The notes under the pieces are model-generated. The model was not told the origin of the DNA. It did not search any database and saw nothing but the letters and a program-made list of their open reading frames with translations. The translations under genes and the position numbers were made by a program. From the sequence record NC_047880.1: DNA of 64,000 bases; one strand, 5' to 3'. Every line of letters starts with the position of its first letter. Within the stretch, counting starts at the first letter, position 1. This document shows, one piece after another, positions 22,284-50,802 of the stretch.

Positions 22284-25200
22284 TTATACCGACTTGTTCT
22301 TAGAAGCAGTCAGTTTCAACTTGTCGAGCGACTGGATGCACTTCTTCAAGTTCGTGATAGTGTAACCTGCTTTCACGATCTTGTTGATGCGAGCCTTAGC
22401 ACCAGAGACGTTTTTCACGAAACCAATCCACATGCCGGTAGCAATATCAAACGTACCGAACTTACGAGTGTTCGGAACTTTGGTGCCAACGAAACGTTTC
22501 ATTTTCGGGTTCGTGTTCAGGTCGAACATGATGCGCAGACGATCTTCCATCACCATCGGATATGCCTTGACGTGTTGCTTGTCGTTAGCAGTCTTGTGGC
22601 GTACAAGGAAGAACTGTTTCAACTGCGATTGCAGCTTAACAGCCAGCTTGTAGTTGAAGCTCAGACGCGGTGTTGATTCGTCGAAACTGTCCATGATGAA
22701 CTCAAGACGTTTAGCCGATGCGTTATCGAATTCCAATTTCTTGGAGTAGATGAAGTCCATCATCTTTTCGAAGTCCGCATAGTAAGCACAGTCGAAGTAG
22801 ACGTAATCACCAAACTCGGTGAAGTCGAAGTCTTTCAGTGCTTTCGCGTCAGGGTCTGTCGCGTCTGCATACAGCGCTACGAAGCCGTTGTATACGGTAG
22901 GCGTCAGGTCCATTGCCATGTCAGTACCGCTATCATCAAGAGCAATGATGCTGGCACCAGGCTTGGCTTTACGCACAGTGTTCGGCAGTGGAGGCAATTC
23001 AGATGCACGGCGACGGCGTACTTTGCCCGCTGCTTCCTGAACACCTTCATTAACAGGCTTACCTGCTGCTACGTTCTCACGGCGCTTCTTAACGCGAACG
23101 GTCTTGCGTTCCTGAATCTCAACCTTCTCTTCTGTAGCGCGAGTGTCAGCAGTCTGTGATTCATCGGCGATGGTGTCTTCGACTTCAACACGACTTGCTT
23201 CCGCTTCGGCACGTTTGCGATCTTGAGCAGTAGCCCAAGGCTTACGCACAGAGAAGAACTTCTTGAGATCTGCTTTGCCCACAGCAGTAGCAACGTGGAC
23301 TTTGTTTGCAGGAACAGTAACGAGATCTTCTGTACCAGACAAACGCACACGCACTGTGGTGATAGGCGAGTCAGCACGGAGTTTACCGTCAACAACACGA
23401 GCAGTAACACCGACAATCAGACCATTACCGAATTCAGTAACGACAGGCATCTTGTCCATCGCTGCTTTCATCATCGGACCGTCCGCGAAGTTCTGGTTAC
23501 GTGCCCAATCCAGCAGACGCTGTAAGCCCCAGCCATGACGGTCTGGAATCTTCTGGTTTGCTACGACAGGCGCTTGCTCCAGTACGCGGAAGTTTTTCAG
23601 AGGCGGTGTTTCAGGCAGAGGCATCATTGCTGCAACTGTCGTTGTACGCATCTCGTGGAACTCTTGCGATTCGATATCGTTCAGGTCTTTCTTCGCACGG
23701 AAGTATTCGATGAAGTCTTCCATCGTGTTGTTATCGATCAACAACTTCGCGCTCATTTTGATCGGGTCAAGCTTGTATTCGTCCAGCTTGTCGTACTTAG
23801 GATTACCCTTTTCATCGAAGCGGGTTTTCTCAAGCGTCTTCCACATCAGACGAGCAACCTTACCAACTTCTAAGGTCTTGTTCGTCATCACCCAGTCAAT
23901 GAATACGACTTCACGAGGCATATCACCAGGCTTACCGTTTTCATCAAGTTGCGCAGCAGAAACATCAGGACGGAAGATACGAGCAGTAGACTGATCGTAA
24001 GTACCTGGTGACCACGGTGTATCACAGCGGATAATACGACTACCCATCTGCATGTTGTGGCCTTCACTGATAGCCTGTTCGTTCGCAATCAGAATCTGAA
24101 CAGCGTTGTCAGTTTTGAATGCGTCGAGGTTAGCGTCTTTGCTCTGGCCGAGCTTACCGACTTCGCCGTGATAGAGAGCAGCAATTTTCTTGTAGTTCTC
24201 TGGCAGTGCGTTGTAGATAGCGTTAGCAGCACGAACATAGCGAGTGAAGACAATCAGCTTACCTTGTGTTTCAGGCTTCCAGTAATCTGGATCATCACTT
24301 GGTGGAACGTTGGACGGCGGCAGATACTGACGTTTGAACGCATCGGTCTGCTTACGCGCAAGATACTTCTGACCTTGATAGACAGCAATATCCAGCTCAC
24401 GAGGTTCTACGCCCGGACGCCATTCGAAGATCTGTTGGTCAGACTGATTGTTTGGATCAGTATCACGCTCAGGCTGTACTTCGAAGTGTTTCTTAATACG
24501 GTTGATGATAGCGACAACTTTCGCACTGACAAAGTTAGTCACACCAGCATCTTCAAACGTCAGGCGCGCTACGTCATCACCCATTGGGTCAGTCAGTAAC
24601 ATTTCCATACGCTGGAAGTACATGTTCAGGTCAGCGTTACCTGCGAGCAGCGCACCGAGATCATCACCTTCTTCAATCTCAGATACGTCGATGCCGCTTT
24701 CTTCATCTGGACCATCTGCATCACCACCGTCATCTTCGTCGTCTTCCATCGCACGTCTACGCGCTTTAGCCGAGTTAGATGCCTCTTGCAGTTTCTCCAA
24801 CACTTGAGAGTACATCGCTTGATATACTTCCATGTGCAAGTTGGAGTTAGGCACAGATGGATCATCAATCTCTACCTGAATGAAGGTGTCGATTGGGTTA
24901 GGCAGCATGAACGCCCAGTGCTTACGCTTGAACTGAATGAACGCTGTGTGGTTTGCCATACGTGAGTGAGCACGACGAATCATTTCGATATCGTCTTTCG
25001 CACCGTCATACGCTACGTCGAGTGAGTCACCGAACATAGCAGGTGTCATCAACGCGGCTTGACCAACAATGTCACGCACACGGTCTGTTACCAACGTACC
25101 AGTAGCGATACGCGCATAACGAACAGAAGGCGCAGTGAATACCGCTTTCGTGTTGAAGTGCACCTGACTACCAGACTGACCACCGCTGTAGTTCTTAACT

Positions 25201-28139
25201 TTGTGCGACTCATCCAGCAACACGTAGCTGAAATTGAAGCGGTTAACGAACTCAACAGCACCACGTACGCGAATACGGACGCCACCGATATCAACGTCGA
25301 TTGTACCTGTTTGCAGGAAGCTCAGGCCAACGATGAAGATGGTGTTCTGTGGAGCTTGAGAGATAACATCGTACAGACGTTCTTCGCCCCAAGTGTTCAC
25401 AGTGTCAGAAGTAATAGGCACTGCGTTCCAACCGTCTGCGATCTTATGCAGGTCATCACACCAGTTAGCAACAAGGTTAGACGGACAGATGATCAGAGGA
25501 CGAATGTTCTCTTCACCCAAGTCGTTCAACTCTTGAATGGTTGCAGCGATATCGGTCAGGCCGATAATCGTTTTACCACCACCGGGCGCGATAAAGATAG
25601 TCGCATAACGAGGACGTTTACGCAGAGTCTTGTGCGCTTCGAGCTGGTGAGGCAGCAGAGCAGAACCCGCTTTCAGACCAGGAATACGAATGTCTTCGAT
25701 AGTGATTGAACTATCAGGCTGGAGCTTATCAATTTCGTTTTCAGCCGCTTCGAAGATTTCCAGAGACTTAGGAATAACGTCGCTGTACATCGTTGCGAAT
25801 GGCAGGATGATTTGTTGCAGACGATCAGAAGCTGGAGCAGTGTCAGAACCCGCGAGAGAACTGAACAGCGCTTTACGATCACCGTTCTTAATCGCTTCAC
25901 ACATCTGGCGATACAGAGCACCACCGAAGTAGTTGTTCAGTCGAGCCATGTCCATCAGCTTAGAACCAGAACCCATCACGAAGTAGTGCGTGTGAGAAGG
26001 CATTGATTCCATTGCAGTGGTCATGTCACCAGATTCAGCGATTGACTGTGCAGCCAAGTTAGAGCCACGCAGACCGGACGCATCGTTCAGTACGCGAATC
26101 ATAATACGCAACATAGTCAGCGCAGGACGATCGTTCGCAATCTCAGGAACGGAGAAGTCGTTCTCAACAAGATTCTGATACAAGCTCTTGTCCATAGGAC
26201 TTTCGTCGAGAGAAGCGTTCTCTGCATCCATACCAACAGAAGCACGGGCGGACTGTACGAGGCTACGCAGGTCAGTAACGTTCTTACTGCCGAGCATGAA
26301 CTCGTAGGTCTGACAGGTCTGTGCGATGATGTTCAGCAACTCGAATACTTTGCTGTTCTCCGTAGAGTTAAACACAATACGGTTTTCAGTAACACCATCA
26401 ATCAGTCGGCCACGGCCTTGCTCTGCTTTCGCAGCTTCGATCAACAGATCGTTAGCAGGCTTGAATGACACCATACCAGAAGAACTCTGGTTTGAACTGA
26501 TTGCTGCGATAACAGACGACGCAGAACGGAAGTTCGGTGCTTCACCAGGTTGAGCGAAGTCATAACCAAGTGAGTCAGCAACGTCCAGTGCAGAAGGTGC
26601 TTTCATACCAACTGTACGGGTTTCTGAAACAGACAGACCACCACCGTTAGACGTGTTCACTACCAGCGCAAAGTCAGGGTCGATGCCGATACAGATGTTG
26701 CTGAATCGTGCGAGTGATTTCGCTTTGGTCTGAATGTCTTTGTCGAAGTCGAGGTTCTTGTTCTGAATCGCGTAGATGTTTGTACGCAATGTATCGTGGT
26801 CAGTAGACAACGGTACGCCTTTCTCAAACAAGTCTTCCAGCACTTGGTTCAGCGTAGACTCATACGACTTAACCATTTCGACGTCAATCTGGTCGCGTGT
26901 AGGCAGCACAGACAGCGTACCGTTCGGCATGATAGTCATACCGTTATCGTCAGCAACAACATCATGCACACCGTAGCCGAACTTCTCACGAAGCGTTTTC
27001 AGCATAGGCAGCATTGTGGCAGACGTAACGTAACGCGGGATACGCGCAGCACGACGAATACCAGTACGAGTTGTGTTAGACACACGGAAGTAGTACGAAC
27101 TCCAACCCTGGAACCAGCGATACAGACACATGGTCTGGGCTTCTGCGCCTTGAGAAATGTATTCAACCATTTCTTTTTCGAGGCTAACAATCAGACCACC
27201 TTCTGCACGGACGTCAGTTTTGAGTGCAACGTCATTGAACTCAACAGGTGTATCGTTGCTGATCTTCATCGCCTGAATTTTGCGATCAAGCATTGCTTTG
27301 CCCGGAATCGAACGAACACCAATCATCATGAAGTCGCCTAAGGCATCGACAACATTTTTATCCAGATTAGCGAACAGGTCGATATCGAGACGGTTCATTG
27401 ACGGGTCGATTGAACGCAAAAGCGCGTTATAGATAGACCAGTCTTTGTCGAGAGGTACACGGACTACTTTGGTATCAAAGGCGTTTGCGTTTGTACGTGC
27501 TTCACCGAAGATATCTTTATACAGAGTACGTGCTGCTTCGATAGCGCGTTGTGCGATATCAGAGCTGTACACGTTCATGTTGGTTGATTCGAACTGTGCG
27601 TCTTTATCGACACGCGGACGGTCTGAACCAGCATCACCTAACAGGTTGAAGTTACCATAACCAGCCAGAGGGCTAGTTGCACACGGCGTACCGGCCATGA
27701 TGATATCTTTACCGCCAGGGAAGCGCGTACTGTTTTCGATGATAGCGCCAGATGTTCCGCCGAGATGCTGACTCAAAGAGTTCTTGATCTCACGGCTCAA
27801 CTTACTACCATTGAGCTGGGTATTGATACGCATGGTCGCCATTTCGATATTCGCTTTAACACGCTTCACGAAATCATCAGGACTTACTTCCAGCATATCT
27901 TCGAATTCAGCACCGTGAGCAACGATGTAGTTGATCAGGTCGAAGGCCGCATAGATACGAGAGACAGTTGCAGCAGCAAACAGCGCAAGCGGTTCATAGT
28001 AATGACGCGCTTTACTGTTGGTGTACATCTTCGTCATCTTCGCATCAAACTCAGGAGGCAAGGACTTAACAGCAAGAGCCTCATTGAATGATTCGGCAAT
28101 TTGCTGAGTAGCCGTAGCGGACGTACTGATATTAATCAT
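22284..28139 (-). CDS. Giant SNF2-family helicase/translocase (1951 aa)
   Basis: APGGGKT, LLDESHKVKN, IATGT, LIVFTRY, ISEGHNMQ, PWSP..YDQSTARIFR; long unique N- and C-terminal extensions. Confidence 0.85.
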   Translation of the reverse strand: MINISTSATATQQIAESFNEALAVKSLPPEFDAKMTKMYTNSKARHYYEPLALFAAATVSRIYAAFDLINYIVAHGAEFEDMLEVSPDDFVKRVKANIEMATMRINTQLNGSKLSREIKNSLSQHLGGTSGAIIENSTRFPGGKDIIMAGTPCATSPLAGYGNFNLLGDAGSDRPRVDKDAQFESTNMNVYSSDIAQRAIEAARTLYKDIFGEARTNANAFDTKVVRVPLDKDWSIYNALLRSIDPSMNRLDIDLFANLDKNVVDALGDFMMIGVRSIPGKAMLDRKIQAMKISNDTPVEFNDVALKTDVRAEGGLIVSLEKEMVEYISQGAEAQTMCLYRWFQGWSSYYFRVSNTTRTGIRRAARIPRYVTSATMLPMLKTLREKFGYGVHDVVADDNGMTIMPNGTLSVLPTRDQIDVEMVKSYESTLNQVLEDLFEKGVPLSTDHDTLRTNIYAIQNKNLDFDKDIQTKAKSLARFSNICIGIDPDFALVVNTSNGGGLSVSETRTVGMKAPSALDVADSLGYDFAQPGEAPNFRSASSVIAAISSNQSSSGMVSFKPANDLLIEAAKAEQGRGRLIDGVTENRIVFNSTENSKVFELLNIIAQTCQTYEFMLGSKNVTDLRSLVQSARASVGMDAENASLDESPMDKSLYQNLVENDFSVPEIANDRPALTMLRIMIRVLNDASGLRGSNLAAQSIAESGDMTTAMESMPSHTHYFVMGSGSKLMDMARLNNYFGGALYRQMCEAIKNGDRKALFSSLAGSDTAPASDRLQQIILPFATMYSDVIPKSLEIFEAAENEIDKLQPDSSITIEDIRIPGLKAGSALLPHQLEAHKTLRKRPRYATIFIAPGGGKTIIGLTDIAATIQELNDLGEENIRPLIICPSNLVANWCDDLHKIADGWNAVPITSDTVNTWGEERLYDVISQAPQNTIFIVGLSFLQTGTIDVDIGGVRIRVRGAVEFVNRFNFSYVLLDESHKVKNYSGGQSGSQVHFNTKAVFTAPSVRYARIATGTLVTDRVRDIVGQAALMTPAMFGDSLDVAYDGAKDDIEMIRRAHSRMANHTAFIQFKRKHWAFMLPNPIDTFIQVEIDDPSVPNSNLHMEVYQAMYSQVLEKLQEASNSAKARRRAMEDDEDDGGDADGPDEESGIDVSEIEEGDDLGALLAGNADLNMYFQRMEMLLTDPMGDDVARLTFEDAGVTNFVSAKVVAIINRIKKHFEVQPERDTDPNNQSDQQIFEWRPGVEPRELDIAVYQGQKYLARKQTDAFKRQYLPPSNVPPSDDPDYWKPETQGKLIVFTRYVRAANAIYNALPENYKKIAALYHGEVGKLGQSKDANLDAFKTDNAVQILIANEQAISEGHNMQMGSRIIRCDTPWSPGTYDQSTARIFRPDVSAAQLDENGKPGDMPREVVFIDWVMTNKTLEVGKVARLMWKTLEKTRFDEKGNPKYDKLDEYKLDPIKMSAKLLIDNNTMEDFIEYFRAKKDLNDIESQEFHEMRTTTVAAMMPLPETPPLKNFRVLEQAPVVANQKIPDRHGWGLQRLLDWARNQNFADGPMMKAAMDKMPVVTEFGNGLIVGVTARVVDGKLRADSPITTVRVRLSGTEDLVTVPANKVHVATAVGKADLKKFFSVRKPWATAQDRKRAEAEASRVEVEDTIADESQTADTRATEEKVEIQERKTVRVKKRRENVAAGKPVNEGVQEAAGKVRRRRASELPPLPNTVRKAKPGASIIALDDSGTDMAMDLTPTVYNGFVALYADATDPDAKALKDFDFTEFGDYVYFDCAYYADFEKMMDFIYSKKLEFDNASAKRLEFIMDSFDESTPRLSFNYKLAVKLQSQLKQFFLVRHKTANDKQHVKAYPMVMEDRLRIMFDLNTNPKMKRFVGTKVPNTRKFGTFDIATGMWIGFVKNVSGAKARINKIVKAGYTITNLKKCIQSLDKLKLTASKNKSV

Positions 28140-40741: not shown

Positions 40742-41107
40742 TTATGCTACTACTTCGAGATCGTGATCACCTGAGTTCCAAATGAGTTCACGAATGTTGC
40801 GGGGCATAATGATGCAGCCGCTCGATGCAGTACCAGGAGCTTTGATGCTATCACCGTGAATCTGGAAAGACGAGCGGCCGAACATCACGTTGTCTTTGTT
40901 CGGATCAAGGGGCATTGCGTAAGGACCTGTCTGAGCACTTGTGCGTGGAGCAGTGATAACGTACTTACCTACAGGCAAAGGACCTACGCCCACGAGATTC
41001 TGATCAGCGTGTTTATTCTTGTGCTCACCTTTACCAGCATAGCCTGTAGCTACAAGCTTGCCTGTCTTGGCGTACATACGACCTGTTGATTGTTCATATT
41101 TCCACAT
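40742..41107 (-). CDS. Tlde1/DUF2778-like L,D-transpeptidase-fold protein
   Basis: GYAGKG...GPLPVGKY...FGRSSFQIHGD...ASSGCII (catalytic His and Cys). Confidence 0.8.
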   Translation of the reverse strand: MWKYEQSTGRMYAKTGKLVATGYAGKGEHKNKHADQNLVGVGPLPVGKYVITAPRTSAQTGPYAMPLDPNKDNVMFGRSSFQIHGDSIKAPGTASSGCIIMPRNIRELIWNSGDHDLEVVA

Positions 41108-41129: not shown

Positions 41130-41171
41130 AAAAAACAAAAGGGCCTACACCTCTCGATGCAAGCCCCTTTC
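41130..41171 (-). terminator. Intrinsic terminator
   Basis: AAAGGGGCT...AGGCCCTTTTGTTTTTT. Confidence 0.65.
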
Positions 41172-41312
41172 TTATAAAATGATTGTCACGAACTCGTTGC
41201 GATTCTTCTTAGGGTTAAACCATACTTCATCTATGATCTTTCCCATACCGAAGTTGATCATGCACACAGTGCGTCTACTGACTAACTGCCAATGCTTTTT
41301 ACGATCAAACAT
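41172..41312 (-). CDS. Small hypothetical protein (46 aa, not in the ORF track)
   Basis: TGATG overlap with the upstream stop; MFDRKKHWQLVSRRTVCMINFGMGKIIDEVWFNPKKNRNEFVTIIL; ends at a terminator. Confidence 0.55.
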   Translation of the reverse strand: MFDRKKHWQLVSRRTVCMINFGMGKIIDEVWFNPKKNRNEFVTIIL

Positions 41313-41824
41313 CACTGGTCCTTAATCATTTTGACTCTGGTGTGATTGAATATTCCATACGTCGGAACATCGTGGTTCGCACCTTCGTTACCTAAGATGG
41401 AGTCATATTCAGCGGAAGCAAGAATCCGACTTATCTCTGCATACTCGTCCCACCACATATAGACACGCTTATGCGTAGAGGCAGGAATGAGATGTGAGAG
41501 TTTGTCCAGACGTTCAATAAGTTTAAGCGCTTCATCACGACCAACAAGCTTCTGTTGGAATGACTCCATGATAAGAGCTTTAACCCGCCTATAGATTTCA
41601 GCAAACTTCACTTCTGTCCAGAGGGAACGGAAGTTCAGACTAGCGGTGCGGCCTGGGTCTGCATGAAAACTGTAGAGTCGCCCATCTTCTGCATACATTT
41701 CAGCATACGCACGGTCTTGAGTTACCCAAGTCATGTGTAGCTTCTTCGCTTGTTCTTCGGACCAGTCGGAGGCTAGTCCTCGGTAGAAGATTTTGGGCGA
41801 TGACAGACTAACGAAAATTTGCAT
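41312..41824 (-). CDS. ADP-ribosyltransferase-like protein (ART-PolyVal type) with an N-terminal tag
   Basis: IFYRG...TWVTQDRAYAEMYA..GRLY...EYDSIL...YGIFNHTRVK matches the ART-PolyVal pattern; start moved to MQIFVSLSS (TAATG overlap). Confidence 0.65.
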   Translation of the reverse strand: MQIFVSLSSPKIFYRGLASDWSEEQAKKLHMTWVTQDRAYAEMYAEDGRLYSFHADPGRTASLNFRSLWTEVKFAEIYRRVKALIMESFQQKLVGRDEALKLIERLDKLSHLIPASTHKRVYMWWDEYAEISRILASAEYDSILGNEGANHDVPTYGIFNHTRVKMIKDQ

Positions 41825-42879
41825 TAGCGACCGGAAGTGCCTTTTTCCCAAGCTGTCTGTGAATCTATGCGATTAGGCTTCTCGTACTGGCTAAGAGCTT
41901 TTACAGCACCGCGTAGTTGTTTACGAGCAGTGGCTTCTGGCACAGGTGAATTGGAACCACCACCGTTGCCTCCAAAGTTTGCATACAGTTTCCACCTGCC
42001 GTCAGGCTGTTTCGACATTCGGAAGCTACCTGTACCATGCTTGTATTCGAATGAGTTACCAGATGCAATAATCTTGCCGCGTGATACACCATCTTTAGTA
42101 GTCATGGTCTTGATCAGGCTCTCCATTTTCGGTGAAGGGTTTGTGCCTGAAACTTTCACTGCACCTGCTTTCTTACCTGTTAAGGCAGCAGTGCGCTTTT
42201 CTTTCAGCTCTTTTGCTTTAGCCTTAGTCATCGCACCAGTCACTGCATCTTTGCGTTTGACAGTCTTCGGTGCATCAACCGGCTTCGGCTTGTCGCTCGG
42301 CTTAGCTCCTGGTGTAGATTTCTTAGCAGCAGAGGAAGCACCGATCTTATCGAACTTATCACCTGTTGCAAAACGAGGTTTGAGTAACGATGGACTGCGA
42401 TTCGTACCGCTCGCTTTCACCCAGAAGTTATCAGCCTTAGCTTTACCGATCTTACTGATCGTGTAATCAGGTTGCGTCGAAGTGATGTAAGACGGACGGA
42501 TAGGCGTGGACAAAACTTTCAATCCCGCTTTGGCGAGTGAAGCGATTGCAGATGCAGCCAGCTTCTTAGCGGCAGCAACATCCTTTTTAATCACAGCGTT
42601 GTTGGCTTTGATCTTAGCGCTGATAGGAGCTTTCTTCTCAGTGTCTCGCGTTGCTTTCAACTTGAGTTTCAGCTTTGCAGTAGCCTGACCAAGTTTAGCA
42701 GCAGCCACGCCTAAGGTCTTCGCTTGCTTCAATGAAGTAGCGGCCTTAGCAACAACAGGCTTGTACTTAGAGTTGATAACAATCGTCGGGCCGTTAGAAG
42801 ATTTGACGATGTGATACGAAGGTTTCTTTACAGCAGATTCTGAGGCCAATGTCTCAGCCACATTAAGTTTGATTTTCAT
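41824..42879 (-). CDS. Lys/Ala-rich putative head-internal protein (paralog family)
   Basis: MKIKLNVAETLASESAVKKPSY; paralog of 37268..38263. Confidence 0.7.
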   Translation of the reverse strand: MKIKLNVAETLASESAVKKPSYHIVKSSNGPTIVINSKYKPVVAKAATSLKQAKTLGVAAAKLGQATAKLKLKLKATRDTEKKAPISAKIKANNAVIKKDVAAAKKLAASAIASLAKAGLKVLSTPIRPSYITSTQPDYTISKIGKAKADNFWVKASGTNRSPSLLKPRFATGDKFDKIGASSAAKKSTPGAKPSDKPKPVDAPKTVKRKDAVTGAMTKAKAKELKEKRTAALTGKKAGAVKVSGTNPSPKMESLIKTMTTKDGVSRGKIIASGNSFEYKHGTGSFRMSKQPDGRWKLYANFGGNGGGSNSPVPEATARKQLRGAVKALSQYEKPNRIDSQTAWEKGTSGR

Positions 42880-42887
42880 TTTAGTCC

Positions 42888-43490
42888 TTACACCAAGGCT
42901 CGTGCTGGTGCATCAAAGTTTTTGCCTGCCGAGTAATCACCGAGAGCAGCGTACAGAGAATCACGCATCATGTTCTGGATGATATCAGAGTTATGTGCTG
43001 ACGCATCTTGAAACGCGACTTCAATCGCCAGAGTGCGAGGGTTGACCACAGCATAACGAATAGGTGCGATACCCTGACAGCGACCCCAAGAGTCTACACG
43101 ATCTTGCAGGCCAGCACTGAACGGGATTTTGAAGTCAGTCAACTGAAACACAGCAGACTGAATTGGAGGTGGAGCAGAGAGCGACATGAATTTACCTGTC
43201 GGACTCAGCTTCTCCATAGTTGTAGACGCATCAAACACGGACTGGAAGTTGTCTGCGATTGATGTGATGTTCTTCAACTTATAGCTGTTTGTCGAAAGGC
43301 CCTTGCGAATCAACTGTGCTACCTGAACTTCGTAGTCACCAGTATCGCCTTGAGCATAAGAGACAAAAGCGTAGAGAGCAACACCATTGGCTTCACGCAG
43401 CAGACGATGATCGAGTACACGGAACCCGACCACTTTAGTCAATGCTTGCGCGTTCATTTGGGTTGCTGCCAAAGAAACGAAGATCTTCAT
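42888..43490 (-). CDS. Putative head-internal protein
   Basis: MKIFVSLAA tag; late operon. Confidence 0.65.
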   Translation of the reverse strand: MKIFVSLAATQMNAQALTKVVGFRVLDHRLLREANGVALYAFVSYAQGDTGDYEVQVAQLIRKGLSTNSYKLKNITSIADNFQSVFDASTTMEKLSPTGKFMSLSAPPPIQSAVFQLTDFKIPFSAGLQDRVDSWGRCQGIAPIRYAVVNPRTLAIEVAFQDASAHNSDIIQNMMRDSLYAALGDYSAGKNFDAPARALV

Positions 43491-43822
43491 TAACGCATCT
43501 TGCTCAGTGCGTCTTTGGCTTTGGCCAGAGTAGGTTGAACATCGGAATCACCGAACTCAGCATTGATAGTGATACCGACTTCGATCACGTTGAAGCCTTC
43601 ATCTTCGTCCGCCATAACAACACCGAAGCGAGCAGTTTCACCATTGTACTTGATGAAACGGTAGTCGAGGATATCGTTCGGACCAGAGATATCAGACGGC
43701 ATACCATCAGCCACTAACATGGCGTACAGAGATTTCTTGTCCAGACCTTTCATGAAGAAAGCTGTAGGGACGCTTGACTCAGATGGTACTGCGTCTTTCA
43801 AATTCAATTTAATAACGGTCAT
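43490..43822 (-). CDS. Putative head-internal protein
   Basis: MTVIKLNLKDAVPSESS tag; late operon. Confidence 0.65.
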   Translation of the reverse strand: MTVIKLNLKDAVPSESSVPTAFFMKGLDKKSLYAMLVADGMPSDISGPNDILDYRFIKYNGETARFGVVMADEDEGFNVIEVGITINAEFGDSDVQPTLAKAKDALSKMR

Positions 43823-44394: not shown

Positions 44395-44421
44395 AATAAA
44401 TCCTCTATGTCAATACGCTTA

Positions 44422-44429
44422 AAAATTAG
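44422..44429 (-). promoter_or_regulatory. Class-A motif CTAATTTT
   Basis: Intergenic before the endolysin operon. Confidence 0.65.
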
Positions 44430-44437
44430 CGTCAGAA

Positions 44438-44466
44438 ACAAAAAGGGCAGCCGAAGCCACCCTTTA
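44438..44466 (-). terminator. Intrinsic terminator (same 18-mer family)
   Basis: GGGTGGCTTCGGCTGCCC followed by a T-run. Confidence 0.85.
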
Positions 44467-48906: not shown

Positions 48907-49344
48907 TTAATACTTCTTAGGTTTCTTAATTGTGGATTTAGGTCGCTTGATTTTACGCAGCGCTTTACGAGCCTCAACAATATCTTTGGCCAGAGTAGCA
49001 CGACGAGCTTTGGTCTGCTCTGTGTCTTGCTCTGTACCTTTAAGTTTGTCGAGACGATTCCACTCGCTAACAAGACGGTCAACGACAGCCGCTCTGCTCA
49101 CACGCTGCTGGTTAACGCGAACGATATCCTGATTCGTTTTAACGGAGCGTTGTGTGTCTTGCACTTCGGTACGTGCAGACTTCACGCCCTTAGTATCACC
49201 GTCAGATTGTTTGTCGTTGAGCTTCTTACGCGCAAGCTGTGATCTACGTTGTGCACCTTTCAAGTCATCCTTAGAGTTCTCCAAGCTGACCTTCGTATCT
49301 TCAAGAGGACTTGTGCGAGCACTCAGGCTGATAAGAATTTTCAT
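48907..49344 (-). CDS. Basic coiled-coil putative head-internal protein
   Basis: MKILISLSA tag; K/R-rich. Confidence 0.7.
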   Translation of the reverse strand: MKILISLSARTSPLEDTKVSLENSKDDLKGAQRRSQLARKKLNDKQSDGDTKGVKSARTEVQDTQRSVKTNQDIVRVNQQRVSRAAVVDRLVSEWNRLDKLKGTEQDTEQTKARRATLAKDIVEARKALRKIKRPKSTIKKPKKY

Positions 49345-49356
49345 AGGACCTCACTG

Positions 49357-50127
49357 CTACTTGTACTTGGAGAGATACTGATCGAAGATGCGAGTAGCCT
49401 TATTTGCATCGACAGGACCTGAAGAAATAGTAGGACCACTTCCCCAATACTTAGCGACGTATGTGTCGTGGCCTGAGTCTTCTAATACGACAGTACCGTC
49501 AGGAACTGAGATGTGTAGAAGGTCACCACTGAGTTGAATCTTCTTCTGTGGTATATCATCATGCTTACCGATGATGCTTTTCAACGCAGACAGAAGAACA
49601 GGATTAGCTTTCTTCTTCGACTGGTCTGCATACGCAGCAGCAGGACCGCTCAGCTTTTCAGCAGGCTTAGCAGTTGTACCAGCTGCGGCTTCTTCGAAAG
49701 CTGTAGTCGGCATGAACAACACACTCAACCAACCAGTTACACCACGTGCACCGAATTTATCAATGTGCTTATCGGGACTCTCACTTTCGGACCAAAGCTT
49801 TGACAACGTTAGAGGAAGTTTGAGTCCACTGAGACCTTCGGTTTTAGCAATCTCTGTGATTTCTCCCATAAACTTCTCACCGAGATCTCTATTGTGCTTG
49901 TCTTTGGCTTCAAGCTTTTTATGTTCGTCTGGAGTAAGCTTCTTACCTTTAACGCTCTTTGCGTTTTTAATCACTTCGTTTCGAACAGACAACGCAGCGT
50001 TAAGACGAACTTGGATTTTATTGATAGCCGCCCGTTTAGAGTTAGGTACTGCGACGATTTTCTTGCCTTCGTATTCAGTGATAATGTACGAAGGTGTTTT
50101 GGCAGACAGGCTTATAAAAATTTTCAT
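49357..50127 (-). CDS. Putative head-internal protein (K/A-rich paralog family)
   Basis: Start moved to MKIFISLSAKTPSY (RBS AGGAG). Confidence 0.7.
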   Translation of the reverse strand: MKIFISLSAKTPSYIITEYEGKKIVAVPNSKRAAINKIQVRLNAALSVRNEVIKNAKSVKGKKLTPDEHKKLEAKDKHNRDLGEKFMGEITEIAKTEGLSGLKLPLTLSKLWSESESPDKHIDKFGARGVTGWLSVLFMPTTAFEEAAAGTTAKPAEKLSGPAAAYADQSKKKANPVLLSALKSIIGKHDDIPQKKIQLSGDLLHISVPDGTVVLEDSGHDTYVAKYWGSGPTISSGPVDANKATRIFDQYLSKYK

Positions 50128-50268: not shown

Positions 50269-50802
50269 CTACAATTCGAGTTCTTCGTGCTCGGCTTCCA
50301 TTTCAGCGGCAGACCAAGAACGAATCACGGATGCGTTACCACGATTACCAGTCAGCATTGTTTTAACTGCTGGTGATGCTTCTACTTCTGCGTAGTGGTT
50401 GGCGAGAGCTTTCTCGTCTTTGAACCACATAAGTGACGATGCACCTTTTGAGCATACTAAGAACTGAACAGGCTTTCCATTACCGACGTTCAACGTCATG
50501 TAATAATCACCAACGCCATTAACACTGAGCATAGGCATTGGCTTCATCACGTATTGGAAGTCGTCCGCTGTTTTAAGCGTCTTATCGCCGAGCAACCAGA
50601 TAGCACCTTCTTCACCTGAGCGAATAGCACTGAGTTGACCACGGCGCGTAGAGATTGTACCAAACGTTTCTTGATCGAAACGGGACAGACCGAAGATAAG
50701 GCTAGCGAGCTTCTTCAGGTCAGGAGTCGTGCAAGGACTATGAATGATAGCCTTACCCTCAGACTCAAGTATGATTTTCGAAAGGGAAACAAAGATTTCC
50801 AT
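50269..50802 (-). CDS. Putative head-internal protein
   Basis: MEIFVSLSK tag; CTAATTTC motif upstream. Confidence 0.65.
   Translation of the reverse strand: MEIFVSLSKIILESEGKAIIHSPCTTPDLKKLASLIFGLSRFDQETFGTISTRRGQLSAIRSGEEGAIWLLGDKTLKTADDFQYVMKPMPMLSVNGVGDYYMTLNVGNGKPVQFLVCSKGASSLMWFKDEKALANHYAEVEASPAVKTMLTGNRGNASVIRSWSAAEMEAEHEELEL

Follow-up and report, generated by a model that had tools for sequence, protein, structure and literature searches.

The gene gp193 of Erwinia phage vB_EamM_Y3 is best explained, with a rough probability of 0.6 for the complete chain of events, as encoding a late-made mono-ADP-ribosyltransferase of the ART-PolyVal type, which would be loaded into the phage head by a short N-terminal leader, injected into the host, and there use NAD+ to modify a host macromolecule. 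The general ideas involved, i.e. the ART-PolyVal domain, head-packaged phage ADP-ribosyltransferases (ARTs) and capsid-targeting sequences, are already published (PMC5512222, PMC9503650, PMC9026906), and the work on gp193 is thus an extension of them, not a new principle. New here are the family assignment of gp193, the alternation of His and Arg on strand 1 of its family, and the exchange, across phage lineages, of proposed loading tags on one enzyme family.

The gp193 gene

The window analysed, i.e. the whole stretch of 64,000 nucleotides, comprises bases 124001-188000 of the 261-kb genome of Erwinia phage vB_EamM_Y3 (NC_047880), a jumbo myovirus; feature coordinates are those of the window. 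The gene under study is:

41312..41824, minus strand: gp193 CDS (HOS33_gp193), an N-terminal tag followed by one ART-PolyVal-type ADP-ribosyltransferase domain, as assigned from the open reading frame, annotation, homology and fold

The initial annotation of this DNA had proposed an open reading frame opening with the tag MQIFVSLSS. It is present as a stop-free translation of 170 residues on the minus strand and is identical with the annotated CDS HOS33_gp193, which is named 'hypothetical protein' in both GenBank and RefSeq. All the motifs that had been named are likewise found in the protein, i.e. Y14-R15-G16, W33-V34-T35, A41..Y44-A45, Y140-D141-S142-I143, Y156-G-I-F159 and V164-K165. In the sequence TAATG the stop codon of gp194, the next gene upstream, shares a base with the gp193 start codon, the ATG at 41824, and the same start Met is present in all the orthologues aligned; for these two reasons a longer reading from a TTG at 41851 was rejected. 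The gene is single-copy within the Y3 genome and is conserved, at 74-100% identity, across 37 records of Erwinia and Dickeya jumbo phages.

Profile homology to ART-PolyVal domains

Direct searches with gp193 reach little beyond its own phage group. A Pfam scan found no family at E ≤ 10, a PHROGs scan gave nothing beyond a weak match to phrog_32732 (E 0.11), and a search of PDB sequences gave chance matches only, as did the A2 profile, for which the PDB sequence matches were helical. The Pfam ART-PolyVal model (PF18760) had no match in a six-frame search across the Y3 genome, and gp193 fails direct membership by the gathering score of that model. A word-index protein search returned nine close orthologues only (71-97% identity). 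When gp193 and a homologue bearing a T4-type leader were compared by tblastn with cultured phages, the Erwinia/Dickeya group alone was found; the homologues with T4-type leaders, considered below, are thus known solely from metagenomes.

A profile made from the aligned close orthologues of gp193 (A1), when searched against a representative library of 1.8 billion proteins, identified 101 relatives at E ≤ 1e-3, with 64 at E ≤ 1e-10. Approximately half are stand-alone proteins of 150-210 residues; in the remainder the matched region is a domain within a longer protein, ten of which have 1,900-5,100 residues. The regions matched by A1 in P0023, P0034, P0024, P0028 and P0030 coincide with PF18760 calls above the gathering score, e.g. 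residues 1122-1284 by profile and 1117-1287 by Pfam in P0034 (Pfam E 2.5e-24), and gp193 therefore has transitive homology to bona fide PF18760 domains (A1 profile, E 1e-24 to 1e-20). The domains that adjoin ART-PolyVal in the long relatives, including MuF_C, SLT, PBECR5 and LPD39, are typical of polyvalent proteins. The ESM Atlas neighbours of gp193 comprise ART-PolyVal clusters together with clusters labelled both AcrIF11 and ART-PolyVal.

Since the orthologue profile matches PF18760 domains, and 14 of 69 aligned relatives match PF18760 directly (best E 1.7e-22), gp193 can be assigned with high confidence, on family and fold together, as a divergent ART-PolyVal member that lies below the reach of the Pfam model. 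The likeness to ART-PolyVal that had been noticed in the motifs is thus upheld by profile homology, by the direct matches of relatives and by the fold, with the qualification that gp193 itself is below the Pfam detection limit.

Predicted fold

With 10 close orthologues as input, structure prediction at first gave a poor model, of pLDDT 55, and a usable AlphaFold model required an alignment of 69 sequences (A3), with which pLDDT reached 92 and pTM 0.85. In this model strand 1 comprises residues 12-16 and strand 2 residues 32-35, a helical insert spans approximately residues 74-137, and two C-terminal strands are formed by residues 142-147 and 153-158. A Foldseek comparison of the model with the PDB gave weak E-values (best 0.013), with ART domains dominating the list and AcrIF11 as its top row.

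When 48,161 solved chains were searched exhaustively by structure (VIA), ART-fold proteins made up about 29 of the first 31 rows. The matches include AcrIF11 (6kyf, Z 7.4 over 121 residues), the Albireti toxin (Z 7.3), diphtheria toxin (Z 6.5), PARP1/2 (Z 5.8) and ParT (Z 5.1), and also tankyrase, MbcT, RES, exotoxin A, cholix and NatT; these values are to be read with the tool's own warning that Z below 8, as is the best value for gp193, is common between unrelated folds. For one other row, chain 9k3a_B of the cyanophage A4 pre-ejectosome (Z 6.5), no ART annotation was found. The best 50 rows contain no recognised toxin of the cholera/C3/VIP2 (R-S-E) type. A search of BFVD, a library of viral structures, returned 28 entries at E ≤ 1e-3, a large part of which bear the name ART-PolyVal or polyvalent protein. 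The model, the VIA rows and the BFVD names all place gp193 in the diphtheria/PARP-like (H-Y-E/D) division of ART folds. Given the near-uniform list of ART matches and the sequence evidence, the assignment of a diphtheria-toxin/PARP-type ART fold to the predicted model is secure; the ART fold expected of gp193 at the outset is thus borne out, in that the pLDDT-92 model matches almost solely ART-fold solved structures.

The structural matches bear on the type of chemistry that gp193 might catalyse. Some ART-fold enzymes are NADases or modify nucleic acids, and the ParT, MbcT and RES toxins are among the matches, as might be expected if gp193 were packaged and active but directed at something other than protein, either ADP-ribosylating DNA or RNA, as DarT does, or hydrolysing NAD+. 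Chemistry of this kind is, however, quite unlikely: the nearest solved relatives, i.e. AcrIF11, the diphtheria-type toxins and the PARPs, modify proteins, and a drain on NAD+ at the onset of infection would be expected to harm a lytic phage.

Proposed active-site residues

The positions proposed to form the active site are:

41777..41785, minus strand: Y14-R15-G16, strand 1, the NAD-binding position by conservation (H-G in other members and in diphtheria-type ARTs)
41720..41728, minus strand: W33-V34-T35, the strand 2 motif (W in 103 of 110 domains, T or S in 104 of 110; model strand 32-35)
41693..41695, minus strand: Y44, a conserved aromatic residue after strand 2 that may stack on nicotinamide (Y in 106 of 110)
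41384..41386, minus strand: E147, an invariant acidic residue, the putative catalytic glutamate (E in 108 of 109; ranges aligned with AcrIF11)

Among the same 110 homologous domains, G16 is conserved in 102, R66 and R80 are also near-invariant, and D141, within the YDS motif, is less conserved (D in 85, N in 14). With such counts the motifs of gp193 go beyond a chance resemblance. In 42 stand-alone relatives, which have only 21-38% identity to gp193, E147 is the sole fully invariant column. In the aligned ranges it is also the acid nearest to D115 of AcrIF11 Pae1, to D146/E147 of AcrIF11 Pae2 and to the catalytic acid of diphtheria toxin; conservation and the aligned ranges together thus point to E147, not D141, as the likely catalytic acid. 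Compared with the set of a strand-1 His, a strand-2 aromatic and a strand-5 acid, gp193 has, as judged from its sequence, R15, then W33 with Y44, then E147 with D141. The combination of R15, T35 and E147 resembles an R-S-E set; the fold neighbours are of the H-Y-E type. Since gp193 keeps every near-invariant residue of the family (R15-G16, W33, T35, Y44 and E147), it is probably active as an enzyme.

At strand 1 the polyvalent members have Y-H-G-T, whereas gp193 has Y-R-G-L; thus, in the aligned sequences, His and Arg alternate at the NAD-binding strand-1 position within one ART family. The ARTs of polyvalent proteins have been described as having an H-Y-D active-site set (Iyer et al. 2017, PMC5512222). 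By comparison with that set gp193 has R for H, and the invariant acid in the members examined is Glu, with which, on the present alignments, the published description appears not to fit.

The presence of Arg in place of the canonical strand-1 His, and the failure of the Pfam model to recognise gp193, would both be consistent with a catalytically dead ART-fold protein that is retained as a binding decoy or as a head protein, structural or internal. Arg is, however, the family majority at this column (94 of 110 domains, with H in 9), where the two residues alternate, and the strong conservation of E147, W33, Y44 and G16 at such low overall identity argues for retained function; a dead protein is considered very unlikely.

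An N-terminal leader outside the fold

Five genes within the window begin with related leaders:

41798..41824, minus strand: leader MQIFVSLSS, codons 1-9 of gp193, a proposed capsid-targeting or propeptide tag outside the fold, as judged from pLDDT, homologues, shared open reading frames and codons
42888..43490, minus strand: gp195, 200 residues, tag MKIFVSLAA, without a family match, from the unit that also contains gp193
48907..49344, minus strand: gp205, 145 residues, tag MKILISLSA
49357..50127, minus strand: gp206, 256 residues, tag MKIFISLSA
50269..50802, minus strand: gp208, 177 residues, tag MEIFVSLSK

In the gp193 model residues 1-7 are disordered, with pLDDT below 50, the fold begins at residue 12, and untagged homologues start only 3-5 residues ahead of the YRG motif; the leader is thus an add-on to the domain. 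The pattern M-x-[IVM]-[FL]-[VI]-S-L-[SA] opens 7 open reading frames in the 261-kb Y3 genome, or 8 when MMLNVSLS is included, compared with a chance expectation that is roughly estimated at 0.001; three of the tagged frames lie outside the window. Pfam gave no match for gp195, gp205, gp206 or gp208, so that no relatedness is detectable among the tagged proteins. The codons of the leader vary between copies, with AGT, AGC, TCT, TCC, TCA and TCG all being used for Ser, and CTG, CTT, CTC and TTG for Leu. The conserved entity is therefore the peptide, on which selection acts, and this synonymous variation led to the rejection of a DNA- or RNA-level cause for the shared leader. Y3 thus has what characterises a capsid-targeting type of sequence, i.e. 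one short N-terminal peptide, under selection as a peptide, carried outside the fold by unrelated proteins.

Other N termini in the window were also observed. A SNF2 protein (22284-28139, minus strand) begins MINISTSATAT, a loose fit to the Y3 tag with I-S-T-S for V-S-L-S, which the strict pattern misses. The gp194 protein (41824-42879, minus strand; 351 residues, Lys/Ala-rich, no family match) starts MKIKLNVAETLASES and gp196 (43490-43822, minus strand) starts MTVIKLNLKDAVPSES; these two share a second, longer type of leader ending S-E-S, which may be another form of an S-x-S signal.

Gene neighborhood and timing

The predicted transcription unit containing gp193 is bounded by two features:

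41137..41170, minus strand: terminator-like hairpin with a T-run, closing the unit just after gp192
44442..44465, minus strand: terminator-like hairpin that precedes the unit; after it come ACGCTAATTTTTA (at about 44419-44432) and the endolysin gene

Between these hairpins, and reading along the minus strand, the order is gp197 (endolysin), gp196, the tagged gp195, gp194, gp193 and the small gene gp192. The sharing of a predicted unit with an endolysin suggests that gp193 is expressed late, which would fit with loading into proheads. The T4 late promoter, TATAAATA, showed no enrichment within the window.

The ACGCTAATTTTTA motif, with 0-2 mismatches, occurs 25-45 nt upstream of the endolysin start codon and of at least four others, the other genome sites being 159177(-), 162309(-), 185096(-) and 205194(+); two of the sites are immediately preceded by a terminator-like hairpin, and the motif may serve as a phage promoter. 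Close beyond the terminator that follows gp192 is gp191 (40742-41107, minus strand), a 121-residue protein with a match to Tlde1 (PF10908, E 1.2e-14) and a weaker one to YkuD L,D-transpeptidases, which is annotated as DUF2778 only. Tlde1 proteins are better known as peptidoglycan-acting effectors of type VI secretion.

Exchange of leaders among homologues

The comparative case for packaging comes from the leaders carried by the stand-alone homologues of gp193. In T4 the capsid-targeting sequence, in which residues 4 and 7 are important to targeting and residues 8 and 10 to processing, loads unrelated proteins into heads and is then removed by gp21 (PMC9026906). According to the T4 record, the IPIII and IPII proteins begin MKTYQEFIAE. 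A similar leader, M-K-x-F-x-Q-F-I-x-E, is present on at least 11 stand-alone homologues of gp193, e.g. MKTFKQFITEK and MKSFSQFINEK, and a leader of the Y3 type on six or seven stand-alone homologue representatives, e.g. MKIFVSLAS, MQIQLSLSG and MRIIISLSG.

The genomic context of several of these homologues is informative. P0044 is encoded on a 91-kb metagenome contig (L009) that also carries Gp23, Portal_T4, gp19, gp15, sheath and terminase genes, the one contig for which T4-like status was verified. It is one of six consecutive genes, at L009:10001-13538, that start MK[TS]FK[QS]FI-x-E, and two of the six are ART-PolyVal genes, of which one is Arg-type and the other His-type. A seventh gene nearby (L009:15615-15980) has the same start, and this tagged cassette, which resembles those of internal proteins, also includes a DUF5662 protein. 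On contig L003 (990-1891) a GNAT acetyltransferase gene adjoins an ART-PolyVal gene, both starting MKSFSQFI; within a polyvalent-protein PHROG of 3925 positions, the GNAT matches the stretch 2689-2797, and the pair agrees with the GNAT-ART neighborhood described for polyvalent proteins. On contig L014 leaders of the Y3 type are present on two adjacent ART-PolyVal genes and on a third gene. In P0042 (L012:52-1731; 559 residues) a T4-type leader precedes two ART domains, one of them ART-PolyVal and the other an ADPrib_exo_Tox domain of the Alt type (PF03496), so that a single protein, presumably packaged, contains ARTs of two unrelated clades.

On contig L006, from which another homologue with a T4-type leader comes, genes for RNR, PhoH and ThyX are present and clear T4 markers are lacking. 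A search for related loci with the A5 subgroup of homologues yielded three viral contigs without clear T4 markers, and one with the A4 subgroup yielded no loci.

At the level of sequence, at least two kinds of phage thus put their own leader on the same enzyme. The swapping of leaders on one enzyme is expected if the enzyme is a cargo and the leader its loading signal, and packaged ARTs have been predicted within polyvalent proteins (PMC5512222). These comparisons suggest that gp193 is probably packaged in the head and injected.

It may instead be that gp193 is an active ART which is not packaged and which acts late in the infected cell, the leader serving in localisation, in turnover or in assembly of a non-virion complex. 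T4 ModA and ModB are ARTs that act without injection, and gp193 shares its unit with an endolysin, which is not itself a virion protein; moreover, packaging is a comparative deduction, and a literature search found no virion proteome for Y3 or a close relative. Against this stand the occurrence of the same domain with a T4-type capsid-targeting sequence within the head/tail cluster of a T4-like contig, its occurrence beside MuF_C inside polyvalent proteins, and the nature of the tag as an addition outside the fold, and an unpackaged enzyme is considered unlikely.

Proposed role

The steps that we infer for gp193, i.e. enzyme activity, late timing, packaging, cleavage and injection, can be arranged as follows. 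The protein would be made late, from one transcription unit with the endolysin, and its leader of 8-9 residues (MQIFVSLSS) would send it into the assembling prohead, where the head protease probably cuts the leader off. The resulting enzyme of about 160 residues would ride in the virion, enter the cell alongside the DNA and ADP-ribosylate a host macromolecule with NAD+ ahead of any phage gene expression. In catalysis R15-G16, W33 and Y44 would hold NAD+, with E147 acting as the catalytic acid. The enzyme might be directed at host RNA polymerase or proteins of translation, by analogy with Alt, or, by analogy with AcrIF11, at a defence complex.

With respect to the last of these, AcrIF11 is an anti-CRISPR ADP-ribosyltransferase that modifies N250 of Csy1 and has its catalytic Asp near the C terminus. 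As it is the nearest characterised relative of gp193, an anti-defence role is possible. On this tentative proposal, which is possible but improbable in its specific form, gp193 and its tagged relatives would be AcrIF11-like anti-defence ARTs, made in advance and carried in the capsid, that ADP-ribosylate and so disable a host immune complex as the DNA enters, ahead of any phage transcription, with each phage lineage adding its own tag. Each of the alternatives considered, i.e. an unpackaged ART, a packaged enzyme with non-protein chemistry and a catalytically dead protein, fits the evidence less well than does a packaged and injected ART.

The proposed packaged and injected ART gives a testable function to a 'hypothetical' protein conserved in 37 jumbo-phage records, and the comparisons lend support to the leader M-x-I-F-V-S-L-S as a head-loading tag of the Y3 group. 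If this is confirmed, the injected cargo of Y3-group phages could be listed from sequence alone, and the ART-PolyVal/AcrIF11 group would gain a single-domain member delivered by the virion, the target of which could be found by ADP-ribose proteomics.

Comparison with known systems

The proposed tag of Y3 resembles the capsid-targeting sequence of T4 IPI, IPII and IPIII in being a short N-terminal peptide, in being carried by unrelated proteins, often from clustered genes, and in lying outside the mature fold. By contrast with MKTYQEFIAE of T4, the Y3 leader reads M-x-I-F-V-S-L-S and has no L/I-x-E cut motif; packaging and cleavage in Y3 are putative and, unlike T4, Y3 gave no match in Pfam searches for a T4-type Gp23 or for the gp21-type protease (Peptidase_S77).

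With the ART-PolyVal domain (PF18760) gp193 shares the fold, the strand-1 [H/R]-G, the W-x-[T/S] motif, the Y44 position and the invariant Glu, and for both the polyvalent domain and gp193 delivery in the virion is predicted. The polyvalent ARTs are, however, domains of giant multidomain proteins, whereas gp193 is a single-domain protein of 170 residues that scores below the Pfam threshold and has Arg for the strand-1 His. Its proposed route of delivery, a short N-terminal tag, also differs from fusion to MuF or other virion modules.

AcrIF11 (PDB 6KYF, 8DWQ) is the best solved match to gp193 (Z 7.4 over 121 residues), and both are small ARTs of the diphtheria-like kind, in which a variable helical insert occurs and the catalytic acid (putative in gp193) is close to the C terminus. 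By contrast, the two have 13% identity and no sequence-level match, the key residues of AcrIF11 are H-F-H-D, and AcrIF11 is expressed from anti-CRISPR loci in plasmids and temperate phages, with no mention of its packaging in the papers examined.

The suggestion of the initial annotation that gp193 is an analogue of T4 Alt can be retained with respect to its proposed route of delivery and life history, but not with respect to homology. Alt belongs to the R-S-E/VIP2 clade and is much larger, whereas gp193, which has no Pfam match to PF03496, has a diphtheria/PARP-like fold and does not fall in the Alt/VIP2 clade; it is therefore an analogue and not a homologue. The likeness lies in the proposed life history, Alt being a late ART that is loaded into the head via terminal propeptides, injected, and active on host proteins (PMC5512222, PMC9026906), and P0042 is a natural fusion in which an Alt-type ART is joined to ART-PolyVal behind a T4-type leader.
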